A stretch of 62,183 nt of DNA, filler included, from Choristocarpus tenellus KU-1152 (lineage: Eukaryota > Protista > Phaeophyceae): NCBI GenBank assembly GCA_964200185.2. It is 11 parts of 11 records of this genome, joined end to end, with 100 filler letters (N's around TTAATTAATTAA, not from the genome) between each part and the next. Parts side by side here need not be neighbours in the genome. Positions count along the whole stretch, not along the records: positions 7,475 to 17,696 come from CAXNAD020003062.1; 10 more parts are not named here. The stretch is one strand, 5' to 3'. A program made the translations under genes and the position numbers. Each line of letters opens with the position of its first letter. Position 1 is the stretch's first letter. Shown here piece after piece: positions 8,401-17,530 of the stretch. The notes beneath the pieces were generated by a model. It made no database searches, was not told where the DNA came from, and saw only the letters and a list, made by a program, of their open reading frames with translations.

Positions 8401-11400
8401 CCTCTTCAAGACCAGTGTGGATAGCATGTAGGTACAGTGGGTCAACAAGGTATAGAACGTATTGCAGCTCACAGCAGAAAATAGTAAAAGAACTGAGCAT
8501 TGGGCAGGACTGTATTCACAACCAAAACGACGATTGGCACACCACCCCACCCCTACAAGCTCACCATATGCTTACCAACATCTACAAGTCAACTTTTCCT
8601 TCGACCTCTATGGAACCCGTCAACTGTATAGTATAGTATATATAAACTGTATAACTAAGTCTACATTATGTACCTCAAGGACAGTCACTGTTGTAGCACA
8701 TCACCACCATTACAAGAAAAAAATCCTCAGAGTCAAGATGACCCTCCAGGTTCACGAGGTTAAGCTTTTTTCACTCAAAATCTGGATAGCCAGGGCTGCA
8801 AAAGGTGCCAGTGTGTGTCAGGTATTACATTCCTGCAACCAACCTCTTTGTTTTTTGCTTCAAGCATTCCATCGCGAACACGGAGCAGGCGAGGGATCTC
8901 TTCCTTGGTGAGTATCCGTGTGTAACCTGCTTCTCTGCGCTTTTCTTTTCGGAACCTTTTGAGTTTCCGACGTCCACTCTTGCTGGAACTATTTTTGCTC
9001 GCCTGGCTCGAGTTTGGGATTGTGCTGACCCTCGAGTCTGGGAGTTGTTTGCATGTTTGTAGAGGGTGAGGTTCGCCTTCTAGCAATGGTGGATGATTCT
9101 TTCGATAAGAAGCCAAACAAATAGGCCTTCATAACCTGTATCGCAGCTATCTTGCTTTGCTCTACCGTTGTTGTAATTTTGAAAGTTGTTTGAGTCTAAC
9201 GTGTCTCTACATCACCTAGAGGTTCGCCTCTATATTTGTCTGACCTCATCTCAGCTAGTATGAGTACTTACTCAAACCTTGGTAGCATCCCATCACGTAT
9301 GACACAGTGGATGGCATTACTCGTCAGTACAAGTATCGTCAGTACGTTCTTAAAAATTGTCAGGGATGGTCGTCTGCTATTGTTGAAGATGGTGGTAACC
9401 TCTGTGTGACCTTTTACATCTCCCAAAGTGTACTATAATACATCGTACAACCACAAGACATCGTGGTTCGCTTACAGGAAGCGGGGATGAGGTGCGACAT
9501 AGAAGAAGCTCGTGATTTGGATGGATATTCTGTTTAGCATTGATCTAACACACAGAATCGATATCCTCCCTAATAACGCTCAATTAGAGGCGCAAAGTGT
9601 TATCTCCAGGCCAGTGAAGTGATAGCCCACCTCTGCTGAAAATACTCGCACAGCTGCCCTCGGAATCAGACAAAGAAGCCCTGCGGGAACAGGGACTGAC
9701 TAATACATTCTCGCCGTAGTCTCCCTCTTTGCTGAATTCCTCCTCCTCCCCACCATGTTCCTGAGTGCTCTGCTCCCTAGAACTATCCAGGACTTCTTCC
9801 ACCCTTCTCCCACACTCTTGACCACTTTCCTTTCCGTCCTTACTCTCGCTGTCATGGACGCTGCCAACACCTTGGCCATTATCAACAACCCCATCGACAC
9901 CTACGCCAAGGGCTCCTATGTTTCGATTCCTTTTGCTTATCATCTCGTATTTTTCTCCAGTCCGGCCTTTAAGTGGTGGTGGTCATGTGCTTGATGTTGA
10001 ACACTATCAACAAATAGCACGAAATTGGTAACTGCTAACCGACGCCTCCTCGATATCAATTTTTGCGCAACTACAACGAGACTAAACCTGAACTGTTGTG
10101 GAAGGAACTGAATCTCAAGGGCAGTGTCCTACCAGCCAAACTTGTCACAAGTGGGCAAAAAATAATAGAAATGTCTTTCGCAACGAGGCGTTCCATGGCC
10201 TTGTTGCGACGGATGATCGAGACTCAGAAACGCTCTGTTCACGGCACAGGTGATAGGAAGCGTCCATTGCCATTTGCTAAAGGGTAGGATGAGGACTGAA
10301 ATTGGAGGGAGGGGTTTTAAATCGCCCTCATTTGTGGTCACATAGAGTATTGCATGCCTTTTTTCCCTGTCGGTAGCTTACTCCCGTTCGGTTTGTTTCA
10401 CAAGAGAGCATCTTGGCAATTAAAATGGGTTGGAAGAAGTCTAGGCAATTTGGGTGGGAGAGTCCACAGCATACGTGGCGTCCCGCAGATGTCCTAATCC
10501 CCGTAATTCATCATTTCGGGTGATCTATATAGCTCTCCTACCGGCAAGATTATTGTTGGTGACTCGCGACTGTTGGGGGTTGTGCAATGTGTTGACCTCA
10601 TTGTCGAATTGCCACCAATCCTCCCCGCGGCTCGAGGTGGCGAGAACACGAGCGGTTCACTCGCACATTAGATAAGAAATCAATGCAGTTGTGGTGCAGT
10701 GGAAAAGCGACGTGTGTGTGAGGGTGTCGATTCTACGGCTAAGATCCCCGAGTTGTTTCTTTATACTGTAATAGTATTCAGGGGAACTTGCTGTGTGGTT
10801 AATTGGTTTGTTTCTACCTATATGCATACCTTGATAGTGGTAAATTCGTGAATGAGCAATCCGTGTTCCTTCCACAACTCTCTCGCCATATATGACAAAC
10901 CAAAGTGGTAGGGTGATTGATCTCTCACTGTCGTACAGGAAACGTGTGTCTTCACCGCCATATCGCCTTTGGCTTACTCCCCCTCCCTTCTCTGTTGGCG
11001 CCGCTATCAGTAACGACGGCCACTTTGTCTTGCTTATCTTTTTTCTTATTATGTAATTGCATTATTGGACTAAAAGTTGAACAATACGTTCTTTCAACTG
11101 ACTTCCTTTACCTGACTTCACCACTTGTGTACAACTACTTGTGCGCCAGTGCCTAACCCTAACCCTAACCCTAACCCTAACTATAGGGCCCTTTTGGGGG
11201 TTGGGCTGCCGATTAATTTTGGACATCCTGTTTAGTTATACTGTGTCACAAGCTAACCTTAACCCTAACCCTAAACCAACACACACAATCATTTCACTGG
11301 CATGTTGTGCCTCTATTCCACGCCATGACACCCTGCTGTTGACCCCCTTTCAATATTGCTCGTAATCTGTATTTTTGTATTGCTGGCAAATCGGATGGAT

Positions 11401-11450: not shown

Positions 11451-14400
11451 CTCCAAAGGTATCATCGGCTGGTTCGGTCAATGTACTCAAGGGTAAGACA
11501 AGTATTTTTCTTGTCACCAACTGTTAACAATTTCTAGCATTACTGGCCTCACTCAATTTATTGTAGAGAAAAACCCCACTCCATCTTCAGCAGTAACAGT
11601 AGATGTAGCATGTCATCCAACTCTTTCCTGACTAGAATTATTCCAACTCCTTTCTGGGTGCTACCTTTCATCTAATTGTTACCATGGCCGTTACTATTCT
11701 TATTATTATTTTTTTCATTTTTACAAGCACTGTAGGAGTACATCTATTTTTGATAATCACCATGGTGATGCGATCCAACTCTTACATGGCCACAACCTAC
11801 AGCAAGCACAATTTCACACATGTGACGTAGTTCTAGTACTAACCCTAACCCTAACCCAAGATTTGTGCATTGGGTATTTACTAGTACTATTAACAGTACC
11901 TAGTATGATTTCGAATTGATACACTTGTATCTACAGGAAGTTTATATGTCACATCAACACTCAATACATACCTGTTTCCCTATGGTGATTGTGCTCTTGA
12001 TGCCTGATGCTGATGTGTCATCATGGTGCTGATGCTATTTTTGCTATAAAACCAATGTGTCATCATGGTTCCACCTGCTCTTGTGATCTTTTTTGAGGCC
12101 AGCGGATGAGGGTAAATTGGCAACCAAGGTCTACCATGGTGTTAACATGCTAGTATTGGCAGGAGTACCTGTGGCGATAACAACGAGCCCATCTATGATC
12201 ACTAAACCTTTGGATGTGTTGCTGGGTCTGGCTATTCCCATTCATGCACACATTGGAATGAACTACAGTGAGTGTTGGTTTGAACCTGAATTATAGTAAC
12301 AATTTCATAGCCTGGTTGTTGACACGTTTGGACTTGTAGTCATAGTACTAACCTTCAAATGTATAATACATGAAAATACTAAGACTTTTTGAGTCGTCGC
12401 CAACCACTGTGTTGCCCTTAGCCTGGTTTGATTCGCCTCTAGTACGCTGTGTTTCCTTACATTGTCTCAAACTTGAGGCACACGCCAGGTTCCGAATCAG
12501 CTATGATGAACATGAGGTCCAGCATGTTTTAGAAGCAGGACGTGTCAGTTATCGTGTGCTCAGAACTACCTGATTGTGTTGGTTACACTTGAATGAAGAA
12601 ATGCAACTTATCATGGTGACCGGCCACCTAAAGCTTTCTTGAGTTATGTTGACAGTTGAAGGTGTACCCTGTGCTGGGACCGGTCATTTTTATGTGTGTG
12701 TGAGAAGTGCTTTGAAGCATGGTAACTTTTTTTTTTAATAGTTGATATTAATCGCAAGGTTACATTCAATATATTGAAATAGTGTACTTTTTTTTTTATA
12801 GTTGATATTAATCGCAAGGTTACATTCAATATATTGAAATAGTGTACCTTTTTTTAAATAGTTGATATTAATCGCAAGGTTACATTCAGTATATTGAAAT
12901 AGTGTACCTTTTTTTTTATAGTTGATATTAATCGCAAGGTTACATTCAGTATATTGAAATAGTGTAACTTTTTTTTGGTAGTTGATATTAATCGCAAGGT
13001 TACATTCAGTATATTGAAATAGTGTACCTTTTTCACCAATATGTACAGTGCCGGTTTTCCTAAGATCATGCAAATAACTGTTGGGGTTCATTCACTCACA
13101 TCCTATCCCTAACCCCTCAAGTTGTGAACTCTATCCAGACAAGTATAGGTTTGAAGCTGATACGATTTACTGATACCAACTATTGTGCATCATTCTGAGA
13201 GTTCCATGCATACAATTTTTGATGTCGCACTGAGAGTATTTTTGGGAATATTTTTGTTTTTTTTAGGATGTCATAATCATCTTCAACTGCGACTTCAACT
13301 TCAACTTACCAATGGTGTAGCTGTACAATAGTATTTGTTATCTGTATCTCTTGTCAATTCCTTTTTTGGAAGCACTGACCCAGTGGCACAAAGTTCTATT
13401 TTACTTTGTGATTGTTTTGTTAATTTTATCACTTCATTGTGTGACTAATCAATGGCGGGCTGTAACCCTATTTATATAGTAGTATCTCCAATTGCACTTT
13501 GCTCTGTCTGAGTCCCCAAGCAAGCTCCATTAGTACAACCTCCCTTCCATGTTGCAGAACCTTTTATGTTTTCTTTGACTTCTTTTGTTCTTTGTATGTA
13601 TATATATTTCCACTTTTAGTTAAACTAGACACTGGTGTTATTTTTGATTGCAACAGTTATCACTGACTATGTGCCAAGATCAGGTCGGGGTATGGCAAGG
13701 GGAGGCATGCTTGCTGCTACTGTGCTGGCCACCCTTGGCCTTCTCAAGGTGATGTTACAGTATCCATATACAGTGGCATTGGTGATCGTTTTATGGGGAG
13801 TAATAATGAGATAGCAAGGTGTATTGTGTTCCATCACGCACCCCTATTTATGTGTATGTGCATTTGTGAATGGCTATTCAACCTCCCAGGACACTATATG
13901 TCAATATGGACTACCAGGTAAGGGTAAGTTGTGGTAGGTGTGGTCCACGGCCATCGCCACAACTTGTGTGGTTTGATGGACGTTGGTACTGCTAAATTCT
14001 GGTTGATGGGTTTGTTCATTATGTTTCAATACCAGTAACTACCACTACAGTATTGATATTACCATACCTATTGGAGTGAGGTCAGGGTTAGGGTTTGGGC
14101 TAGATTTGGTGAGCGCTTGATGGCTTATCAGAGATAATTAATTAGTTGGCTGGTTAAGGGTTACGGCTAGCGTGTTTGGGGTTAGGGTTAGGTGTGTCAA
14201 TTGAGTTGAACTGGATTGTCTGTTGCTGAGCAAGCTTGATTTTGGTGAGTAGTGTCTTGAGGACCTTAAGTAAAAAGCAATGACTACTTTGTACTTGAGT
14301 AATGGTTCCTGGGAGATTGCTGATAGGTGGTGGTGTTGTTGTTGTTGTGAGGGGAGGAGGATGATGGTCACACTTTGACTATGGTGTCATCAAGAAAGGT

Positions 14401-15774
14401 AACTTGGCATCATCACTGGTTGGACAACTGGCAAGAAGTACGTTGGTCATTGTGCTTACCATGATTGTGGTGATACAAGTGAGATACTCCAACACAATAC
14501 CAAGGAGGTTCAAGAAATGGCCCATTGATGAATGAACACAGCTGTCTCTCTTCAGCACTATTATTTTATTATTTTTCATGTTCATAGGATCTACAATAAC
14601 TGTACTTTTAGAGTTATGGGGAGTGCCTGGAGCAATATTTGTTAGAGGTACAGTGTAAGTAGCGTTCACAGTGTGATGTAGCTACTGGAACAACTTAGGG
14701 TTAGGGTTACTAACCCTAACCCTGGAGCAATATTTATTAGAGGTACAGTGTAAGTAGCGTTCACAGTGTGATGTAGCTACTGAAACAACTTGAGTCTTCT
14801 TCGTGCTTTGAAGTGGTAGGACTCTGGTAGGACTCTGGTACATTGTTATCACTGGTGCTTGGTAGGTCCACTTCTTTCATCTTTTTTTTTTAGGGTTAGG
14901 GTTAAGATCGATTATAATCAATTTTCTGTTCTTGATACCGTTCGTTGTGTTGCTTTAGTTGCCTTATGACAAACTCCCAGCGCCTTTGAATTTGGATGTG
15001 AGGAGTGGTTTAACAGCGCATTATTCTGATTTTTTTTACTGGTGTGTTTTGGGATATTTGTATATTTGCAAGCTATTAATTGGAGTATGATATCTTAGTG
15101 GGGATGAGTTGGCAGGGATGCAAAAGGAATTTTTACATGTGCGTTTTTTCATTAATATTATTTAGTGAGGGTACCATGTTGTATTTAGCATTATTATTAT
15201 TATTTAGCACCTTTGAACCTTTTTTATTTGCACCAGATAAGGAATAGGGTTAGGGTTAGGGTTAGTTCATGCCCACACTCCATCAGACTTATATAGTTGA
15301 GGGTAAGCGAGATACATTTATGTCAAGTGTCCATGACCTGTCTTCAAAGTGATCCGATTTTGGCAGTTATATGATCCTTACTAACCCAAACCCTAACTCT
15401 TTCCTTTAGGCTCTAGAAGTTGAGGCATTTACTTTGCTACACGGATGTGATAATGTTGAAGTAAAAGGTCTCTGTTATTAGGGTTAGGGTTATTTGGGAG
15501 TACAGACTGTCACCAGCAGTCCACAAGTGGAGCTATTGATTCCTATTGGGTTATCATCCCACTTCATTTTTTTGAAGCATGTAGAGAGGTGATAGGTCTG
15601 TTCTGACATAACCTCTCTCTACTCTTTTCCACATGCAATATGTATCGATGCTTTTGTACCCACTATCTGCAGCTAAATATTGAAGGAGCAGGTTTGACGG
15701 AAACTCTCAAGGCGACTTGGAGACAGCCCACAGCAGAGACTTCAGAGGAAAGAGAAGGGGGCAAAACCACATAA
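11451..15774 (+). CDS. SDH4: Succinate dehydrogenase cytochrome b small subunit (CybS/SDH4); first exon(s) not located
   Basis: Exons 11451-11492, 12103-12267, 13657-13748, 15673-15774 splice in phase. Product: ...ADEGKLATKVYHGVN...PLDVLLGLAIPIHAHIGMNYIITDYVPRSGRG...TLGLLKLNIEGAGLTETLKATW...*. The HxHxGxxxIIxDY motif and three hydrophobic helices are typical of CybS. Confidence 0.9.
12722..13032. repeat. 60-bp minisatellite, about 5 copies, in SDH4 intron
   Basis: Exact 60-nt period: T-tract-TAGTTGATATTAATCGCAAGGTTACATTCARTATATTGAAATAGTGTA. Confidence 0.95.
14626..14791. repeat. 71-bp direct duplication flanking head-to-head telomeric repeats
   Basis: Copies 14626-14696 and 14721-14791 (2 mismatches) separated by AGGGTTAGGGTTACTAACCCTAAC. 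Confidence 0.95.
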
Positions 15775-17530
15775 GAATAATTATAGTGTTGGTCAGTAAT
15801 ATTTGGGTAAGGGTTGGGTTGTCTAAAAAAGAGCGTGAGGTTGTTTTTATGCAACTTGATGGCTCTAATATTTACACTGATTTGGATGAGGTGATATTGA
15901 TGGTGTTGTCTGTCTGTTGATATGAAATTGTGAACATTTGTCCAAGAATGCACTTTACTTTAAACTCATAACATGATCAGGAATGAAAGAGTCCATCAGT
16001 GGGCAATTGCCAACCCTGGCTGACTTGGCAATGACTTGTGACAGAGTGTTGTAAGGGCGCTAAAGGAAGGGAAGGAAACATGTAGAGCAAACTTTGTTCT
16101 AACTTAGATGAGTTTGACATTTTCTGGTGGGTTAGGGTTAGGTCAATGAGAAATCTGCGCAGGGTCTCCATCAGCTCCTCCAGGAGGAGGTTGGTGTTGA
16201 CAGGAGGGGAGGAACTATTCAAAGCGTAGGCAGCTGTTGGGCTTAGCTTTCCGTTGCTGTCTATGACCTCGTTTTGTATTTTGTTTTTTGAAAGCAGTGA
16301 TCTAACTGGTTACAGTCCCACATTAGTTAAACAATCAACAGAAAGTATCTTGTCACAGAACTGATTTATGGATGCAAGGCATATGCAGTAATCATGGTTG
16401 TGAAGACATCTACAATATCCTCCAACACATCCACATTACTTTGTATCATTGAGTATCACATACAACCATACTATCAGTTAGTCTTAGCTATGTATGTTGT
16501 GGCGATTCACCATTGTTGCCATCAATTCGCAACTTAATTGTACACACTCAAGTACAATAACGCATACACAGTATAATTTGAATTGATGGTATAGAGTAGT
16601 GAATGACCACAACATACAAACCATCCATCGAGGGCACTTTCTCGTGCTAAGGTGGTTTGACCAAGTCTATGACGTCTTGTATTATTAGTCATTCTTAGAG
16701 TATATTTTGTGCTTGTCCTCACCTTATTCTGGGGACTGTGGTAACAGGCACTACACACTGTACTTGTTCTCATCTTTCCTACAAGCTAGGCTGCCTTTGC
16801 TGTACGACCAAGTGCAATGCTACAAGTTATAGAGATACTATTCATAGCACAGCATACATACGCAATCAATAATAGTTCAAACAATGACCCGCCCATGTAT
16901 TTATTTGTGTAAGTTTTGTTCAGCTCCTCCTCTCCTTCTCACGCTGCCTCCTTCAAAAAAAAAATGCAGTATTCATTTTGGTGGTGTGCCATTCTGCAAT
17001 AATTTAGACTTGTACCTGTTTCCCACATTTTTTTGAGGCATAAATACTACCAACTATTCTGGAGTAGTGTATGACTTTATATTGCAGCAGCACTACATAG
17101 TATGATGCAGGTGTACAATTTGAAGTGCTTGACATGTCAACTTTGTCGTGTTGAAACCATTTTTCTCTGGCAGCAATCTAGAGATGAATGGATTCAAGCT
17201 AGATCACTCACACTCCATTACAAGAGAGTTCTCTGACCTTTCACCACTGAGTTCCGAGAACACTCTCTCTTTCTACTTTACCTTTGACTGGCCAAATACA
17301 TTATTCATTGGATAGGTCTGGCACTGGAATATTTCTAAATGGAGAAAAGTTATGTGGTGTATCCAGTCACAGGGTTTAGATGTATGTACTCGGTAGTGCT
17401 TGGAAGTTTTGCATTTAAATCCAGTTTTCTATATTTTGCGATTCAATTATATTCCTCACGGATGAAATTCTAAGCTTGACTTCAAAGCATTCATGTCTAT
17501 TTGAAAAAATTGAATACAATTTAGAAAATT

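Follow-up and report, generated by a model that had tools for sequence, protein, structure and literature searches.

Head-to-head telomere repeats between 71-nt direct repeats in an intron of the brown alga Choristocarpus tenellus: a candidate scar of a chromosome break extended at both ends and rejoined

INTRODUCTION

At the fusion-type site of human 2q13, head-to-head telomeric arrays join two different chromosome ends and are flanked by subtelomeric DNA. In L1-type twin priming, which is a form of target-primed reverse transcription, both staggered 3' ends of a cut target are extended by reverse transcriptase. The rotifer R9 element, with its long duplications, is cited in PMC8557442. In mammals, short interstitial telomeric sequences have been described as TTAGGG repeats inserted at double-strand breaks in primates, rodents, and the horse (Nergadze/Giulotto; PMC7215372, PMC2246262), and direct duplication was detected at 3 of 66 horse loci and attributed to staggered breaks (PMC7215372). 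Among 1,229 tracts in Caenorhabditis elegans, none is head-to-head (PMC6800518; PMC9071541). In tumors, two-sided telomere insertions make up 2% of insertions; these are somatic, are defined within 10 kb, and have been linked to ALT and to extrachromosomal telomeric DNA (10.1101/157560).

Choristocarpus tenellus is an early-branching brown alga that was sequenced in the Phaeoexplorer project (10.1101/2024.02.19.579948). The window (the whole stretch of DNA that was analyzed, 62,183 nt) contains an intron in which telomere-like repeats in head-to-head orientation lie between two copies of a 71-nt sequence, and similar sites are found elsewhere in the genome. Like the mammalian inserts, these are short TTAGGG runs at unique internal sites, with break bases that are in register with the repeat, flank changes typical of end joining, and an occasional direct duplication. 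In contrast to the mammalian inserts, which are one-sided and in a single orientation, the ends in C. tenellus each carry a G-strand run, which produces a head-to-head palindrome; the duplications reach 73 nt and accompany this two-sided form; and the host, a brown alga, has a 164-Mb genome in which a two-repeat 12-mer is matched roughly 20,000 times. The resemblance to human 2q13 lies in the head-to-head G-strand arrays produced by the joining of two repeat-bearing ends. However, unlike the flanks of fusion-type sites, both flanks at the C. tenellus locus are the same unique 71 nt in one intron, and therefore the two ends would have come from one local break. Humans have one head-to-head fusion site, compared with ~80 head-to-head sites in C. 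tenellus.

The tumor insertions (10.1101/157560) also have opposed telomeric repeats across the breakpoint and microhomology at most junctions, but the C. tenellus sites are germ line, compact (17 to 68 nt), and bounded by exact target duplications. As in twin priming, the two products are oriented toward each other, and the sequence between the nicks ends up as a target duplication of variable length. The C. tenellus scar differs in having no element-encoded sequence, poly(A), or endonuclease site, and the template would be telomerase RNA. In a partial search of the literature, we found no earlier compact two-sided inserts with direct target duplications and no interstitial telomeric repeats in brown algae.

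RESULTS

Structure of the locus. The two direct copies of the 71-nt sequence are at positions 14626 to 14696 and 14721 to 14791 (both + strand), as determined by reading of the sequence and with a repeat finder. They are identical at 69 of 71 positions, and both differences are G/A (14641/14736 and 14688/14783). The 24 nt that separate them consist of a 13-nt G-strand arm (14697 to 14709, + strand; two repeats and one base), which would be an addition to the top-strand 3' end, followed by an 11-nt C-strand arm on the top strand (14710 to 14720, - strand), which would have been added as G strand at the 3' end of the bottom strand. If the insert is extended by the first three bases of copy 2, it forms a perfect 13-nt palindrome about the C at 14710. 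This base can be read either as a one-base center or as part of the C-strand arm, and in the latter case ...TTA meets CTAA... in a blunt join. In-register bases are present on both sides: 2 nt on the left, where the last two bases of copy 1 (TT, 14695 to 14696) continue into the G-strand repeats, and 3 nt on the right, where copy 2 starts in CCT (bottom strand, AGG) and so continues the C-strand arm. At this locus, telomeric repeats are absent outside the two copies. The 71-mer is found at these two positions only in the 164-Mb assembly (E values of 1.7e-29 and 8.8e-27), and so the pair is not a chance match. A sequence-only reading of the window had described head-to-head telomere repeats between 71-bp direct repeats, with 2 to 3 nt of homology to the telomere repeat on each side (TT on the top strand and AGG on the bottom strand); the first of these is correct to the base, and the register is as it proposed.

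Two other small structures lie downstream. An 11-nt unit is present in 2.5 perfect repeats at 14814 to 14840, 23 nt beyond copy 2, and is a second small duplication near the scar. An inverted pair at 15238 to 15266 and 15380 to 15408 (29 nt, 83% complementary, with 113 nt between the arms) has telomere-like arms bordered on the outside by 7 to 8 nontelomeric bases. The pair occurs only once in the genome and is therefore not a member of a repeat family; possible origins are a head-to-head scar that captured filler and an inverted duplication of local sequence.

Support for the junction in public runs. A 109-nt unitig (14658 to 14766) crosses copy 1, the insert, and copy 2 with zero differences in all three public runs that hold the locus, and its depth is that of its flanks. 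The 46-nt stretch that is common to both copies forms its own unitig, at ~2x the flanking depth in runs X2 and X3. Thus, the junction given by the sequence-only reading is present in the unitigs of three runs, although these are contigs rather than raw or long reads, and the runs belong to one study that possibly includes the source data of the assembly; we regard them as support for the junction, short of independent proof. All three runs carry the insert: none of their contigs skips it, an empty allele with a single 71-nt copy was not observed, and the assembly contains no paralogue of the 71-mer. Several apparent joints (14099 to 15473, 14103 to 14690, 14908 to 16129, and 14910 to 15478) were considered as deletion alleles and rejected because they rest on ~20 nt of telomere-like repeat from other loci, and small indels at 14708 to 14709 were rejected for the same reason. 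The assembly comprises 164 Mb in 27,310 contigs. Its largest contig (G000:C1; L054:1486-3414) is plastid DNA, with a dnaK that is identical to the C. tenellus plastid protein.

The host intron. A spliced contig in run X3 joins 13748 to 15673 with GT..AG ends, and therefore the site is within a 1,924-nt intron (13749 to 15672, + strand, splice sites read), the last intron of a CybS/SDH4-like gene. The intron is spliced out normally despite the insert. The exon upstream (13657 to 13748, + strand) encodes a membrane-anchor segment (..ITDY..), and the last exon (15673 to 16230, + strand) is coding to the stop codon at 15772 to 15774, ends in a typical small-subunit tail, and continues as the 3' untranslated region. 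An earlier exon lies in an open frame at 12093 to 12296 (+ strand), and its nearest protein-atlas clusters are all PF05328 CybS: the three matches shown are CybS clusters (0.87 to 0.89), and the ten best family-bearing matches share a family or clan. Single exons, searched apart and unjoined, gave no Pfam or PDB match, the pieces being too short. Based on these comparisons, in which the protein-atlas matches are a lead only, the host gene is likely CybS/SDH4, the predicted small membrane subunit of succinate dehydrogenase. The earlier placement of the site in an SDH4 intron is thus borne out for the intron by the X3 spliced contig, while the SDH4 label is likely but not proven. No Rfam RNA family was detected in 13300 to 16300, which means that the 71-mer does not correspond to any known intronic RNA gene. 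A minisatellite (60-nt period, 5.1 copies, 95% matches) is present at 12729 to 13033, in the intron before this one.

Telomere-like runs are abundant in the genome. The two-repeat 12-mer has 19,790 exact matches in the 164-Mb genome, compared with 57 for a control (~350-fold), and for three repeats the values are 6,354 and 6. The 10.2-kb piece that contains the intron has 18 near-matches to the two-repeat 12-mer, versus 0.07 expected. Besides the arms of the palindrome, nine further runs of 12 to 30 nt are present in this piece, which is ~10 times the genome average: 11152 to 11181, 11260 to 11274, 11839 to 11857, 14084 to 14095, 14179 to 14192, 14890 to 14904, 15245 to 15265, 15478 to 15492, and 16129 to 16142. 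Three of these precede the gene and have CCCTAA on the + strand; the other six lie within the transcribed part of the SDH4-like gene and have TTAGGG as the sense strand, a pattern that may reflect a strand bias relative to transcription.

We examined 197 repeat blocks in the window and 88 kb of fetched loci. They are mostly perfect, with a median run of 15 nt, and their flanks have no conserved sequence apart from one repeat-family pair. The commonest end of the G-strand runs is ...TTA (72/197) and the commonest start is TTA (63/197). The preferred end may reflect the boundary of the telomerase template, but joins with a TA overlap inflate the value of 72/197.

Head-to-head polarity and target duplications. 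When the genome was searched for 8-nt arms with 0 to 8 nt between them, there were 89 G-then-C (head-to-head) matches but only 4 C-then-G (tail-to-tail) matches, and with 12-nt arms there were 21 and 1. In total, there are ~80 head-to-head sites, which are compact (17 to 68 nt). Random juxtaposition of runs, or fold-back copying of an existing run, would produce both orientations alike; only a process that adds the G strand to 3' ends predicts the asymmetry that we observe.

For 51 fetched head-to-head sites, 300 nt from each side were aligned with each other. Exactly abutting direct duplications of 10 to 73 nt are present at 13 of the 51. Eight are long and lie within a few bases of the block (~73, 71, 71, 69, 53, 53, 45, and ~40 nt, one of the 71-nt duplications being that in the SDH4 intron), and five are shorter (10 to 16 nt). 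At an alignment score of ≥24, 8 of 51 head-to-head sites were detected, compared with 40 of 2,604 random places (1.5%; Fisher P = 2e-6), and at a score of ≥10, 13 of 51 were detected, compared with 65 of 2,604 (2.5%; Fisher P = 9e-10). The random places with abutting repeats of the long class are mostly inside minisatellites. Among isolated single-orientation runs, which were sampled within the 88 kb of fetched loci and hence near head-to-head sites, 5 of 110 were flagged, but four proved to be head-to-head sites in which one arm is short; with these set aside, the count is 1 of 106 (P = 1.5e-6). The difference between 13/51 and 1/106 indicates that long duplications accompany two-sided addition. 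The head-to-head block between direct repeats that the earlier reading described at one locus is therefore recurrent, with 13 of 51 sites having abutting duplications; the staggered form is nonetheless the minority, since 38 of 51 sites have no duplication.

Identity between duplicates ranges from 100% (L005, L011, L026, and L037) down to ~84% (L015), which indicates that the events are spread over time. Two loci have more than one block. L005:1400-1720 (G000:C260 near 10900) has three copies of a 65- to 71-nt unit with two head-to-head blocks between them, and L049:540-700 (G000:C6063 near 2880) has two copies of a 65- to 71-nt unit with two head-to-head blocks. The two blocks within L005 differ in arm lengths and center, as do the two within L049. 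These loci may represent repeated events at one place, and later tandem duplication of unit plus block may have contributed.

Junctions and centers. The duplications give the ancestral sequence on each side, and this allowed the true ends to be placed at 13 sites. At the left junction, 10 of these 13 have at least 2 in-register bases, for which the chance expectation is 6%. At the right junction, 10 of 13 have at least 1 (chance, 25%) and 6 of 13 have at least 2 (chance, 6%). In L037 and L032, the cut falls in an older telomere-like run, which is a preferred primer. The centers were compared at 50 sites. Thirteen read GGGTTAACCC, which has the 2-nt TA overlap that two ...TTA-3' tails pairing by TA would give, and the remainder are joins at other repeat phases or have 1 to 8 nt of filler. 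Such varied centers are typical of end joining and are incompatible with insertion of a fixed element. Apart from one repeat-family pair, the head-to-head sites have flanks that are unrelated to each other. At L033:559-626 (G000:C1183 near 12480), the G arm of the head-to-head block consists of variant repeats in which TTTAGG is mixed with TTAGGG; these could result from telomerase stutter or from copying of a degenerate array.

Derived state of blocks at other sites. The L008 block lies inside a copy of an ~238-bp repeat family, and it is absent from all 10 of the other copies that were aligned, which have a short stretch at the equivalent position (ACATGGG in several). This makes the block an insertion, which was accompanied by loss of 5 nt and left no duplication. 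Pairwise comparison of L008 with L046 was ambiguous, and this was cleared once the whole ~238-bp family was aligned. At L011:1404-1500 (G000:C2206 near 9919), a head-to-head scar lies in a decayed tRNA-Cys(GCA)-like sequence, and the scar's 53-nt duplication begins within the T-arm. The T-arm is found on both sides of the block, but it is present once in intact tRNA-Cys genes (L069 to L071). Based on these comparisons, the block in L008 and the duplication in L011 are derived. A genome search found no paralogue of L026 and hence no empty site there, and the same was true of the inverted pair at 15238/15380. The ~238-bp family itself (L008:205-470, L046, and L058 to L067) has 5,486 candidate copies and a miniature-inverted-repeat-like structure, with terminal inverted repeats of about GAGCCAAAGTATCTTAGAGGGTA whose core is telomere-like. 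Two of the copies have ends that have been altered to perfect telomeric repeats.

DISCUSSION

What can be observed directly at the SDH4 intron locus is the product and its polarity: G-strand repeats followed by C-strand repeats, with a target copy on each side. The sequence-only reading took this to be the result of a break that was extended at both ends and religated, and that interpretation is supported by the polarity, the duplications, the register of the junctions, the varied centers, and the derived state at other sites. We consider it probable (at roughly 70%) that the scar records a germ line chromosome break at which telomere repeats were added to both ends before these were rejoined.

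The proposed course of events is as follows. The two strands would have been cut 71 nt apart, and the 3' ends, ...CAACTT on the top strand and ...CTCCAGG on the bottom strand, would have paired by 2 to 3 nt with the telomerase template, after which about two TTAGGG repeats would have been added to each end. The single-stranded stretches would then have been filled in, either by C-strand synthesis primed on the new repeats or by the tails copying each other after pairing at their termini, and the two very short, unprotected neo-telomeres would have been joined by end joining. The 71 nt would now be on both sides because both overhangs were made double stranded before joining. The same process would have occurred many times in this genome, with cut offsets of 0 to ~73 nt and priming on 1 to 3 nt.

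A geometry with 3' overhangs is the favored one, since long duplications accompany two-sided additions and hardly ever one-sided ones. Filled-in 5' overhangs would place duplications beside one-sided runs as well, and those are rare. If the 3' tails are complementary, reannealing and flap removal could erase an addition made on one side only. We infer that the extending enzyme was telomerase, a leaning that comes from the short and pure arms and from the preferred ...TTA end.

The same break and rejoining could have taken place with a different source of repeats, if the 3' ends annealed by microhomology to telomeric DNA, either at a chromosome end or extrachromosomal, and were extended by a polymerase (telomere capture, template switching, or polymerase-theta-type synthesis). 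In-register bases at the junctions are expected equally from this route, microhomology in cancer genomes has been read as end joining or microhomology-mediated insertion (10.1101/157560), and the variant repeats in the L033 G arm could derive from a degenerate array. However, the very short, mostly perfect arms (median, 15 nt) fit a few cycles of telomerase, and the repeats come without accompanying subtelomeric sequence. The frequency with which G-strand runs end in ...TTA also suggests a template boundary, although joins by TA overlap inflate that figure. On balance, we find copying from telomeric DNA unlikely.

It is improbable that the locus arose by two separate events, that is, by a 71-nt tandem duplication followed by a break with telomeric uptake at the boundary between the copies or by a palindrome followed by slippage of its flank. 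Tandem repeats are common, with 1.5% of random places lying between abutting repeats, and the units and blocks at L005 and L049 form short arrays. Nevertheless, the first order of events requires a break exactly at a copy boundary at 13 independent sites. The second predicts the order copy-block-copy-block rather than the copy-block-copy observed at this locus, which has no telomeric repeats outside, and the blocks within each of the two arrays are unlike each other in arm lengths and center. The link between duplication and two-sided blocks (13/51 versus 1/106) is also left without an explanation.

The duplications could instead be those of a small mobile element whose core is palindromic and telomere-like, or of the joined ends of an inverted-repeat element that has been internally deleted. 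The high-copy ~238-bp family has terminal inverted repeats with a telomere-like core, and telomere-like arms also occur in the window as an inverted pair separated by 113 nt. However, a transposase gives duplications of a fixed length and not of 10 to 73 nt, arm lengths and centers are unlike at nearly every site, there is no conserved sequence bordering the 197 repeat blocks, the 71-mer and the inverted pair are each unique in the genome, and the ends of the ~238-bp family read TTAGAGGGTA rather than perfect repeats. We consider a mobile element very improbable. Least probable of all is an artifact in which a short-read assembler folded or misjoined reads at a telomere-like repeat: the assembly is indeed fragmented (27,310 contigs) and contigs of other telomere-like sites partly align on the palindrome, but the 109-nt unitig has unique sequence on each side and flank-level depth in three runs, the shared 46-mer is at the double depth that two copies require, and the same architecture occurs with different flanks at many loci.

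Two further candidates were discarded. The ends of a single transposon family were rejected as the source of the repeats on the basis of the heterogeneous centers and the flanks without conserved sequence, and a role of the palindrome as a selected binding motif was set aside, as it accounts for neither the duplications nor the variable centers.

If the scars are the product of a break extended at both ends and rejoined, they are best filed as a recurrent new form of telomerase-mediated break repair in the C. tenellus genome. More tentatively, it is possible that telomerase routinely acts on internal 3' ends in this species, with pairs of nicks 10 to 73 nt apart undergoing a retroelement-like twin priming in which both ends are extended, filled in, and joined, and that this is the source of most of the thousands of short runs in the genome. 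If true, the duplication-flanked head-to-head scars would provide a natural archive of how the ends at spontaneous breaks are structured, and neo-telomeres of two to seven repeats would not be protected from fusion.

Telomeric insertion at break sites has been documented mainly in mammals, and nearly always in one-sided form, whereas C. tenellus offers dozens of compact two-sided scars. Because the target duplications fix the positions of both 3' ends, a scar shows the spacing of the cuts, the number of priming bases, and the joining of neo-telomeres. For annotation, this means that a telomere-like palindrome or a short repeat in an intron of a brown alga would be read as a repair scar and not as a chromosome end or fusion point. 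It also makes several questions testable from sequence: how freely telomerase acts at internal breaks outside animals and yeast, how short a telomere seed fails to cap an end, and how some genomes came to have a heavy load of interstitial telomere-like repeats.
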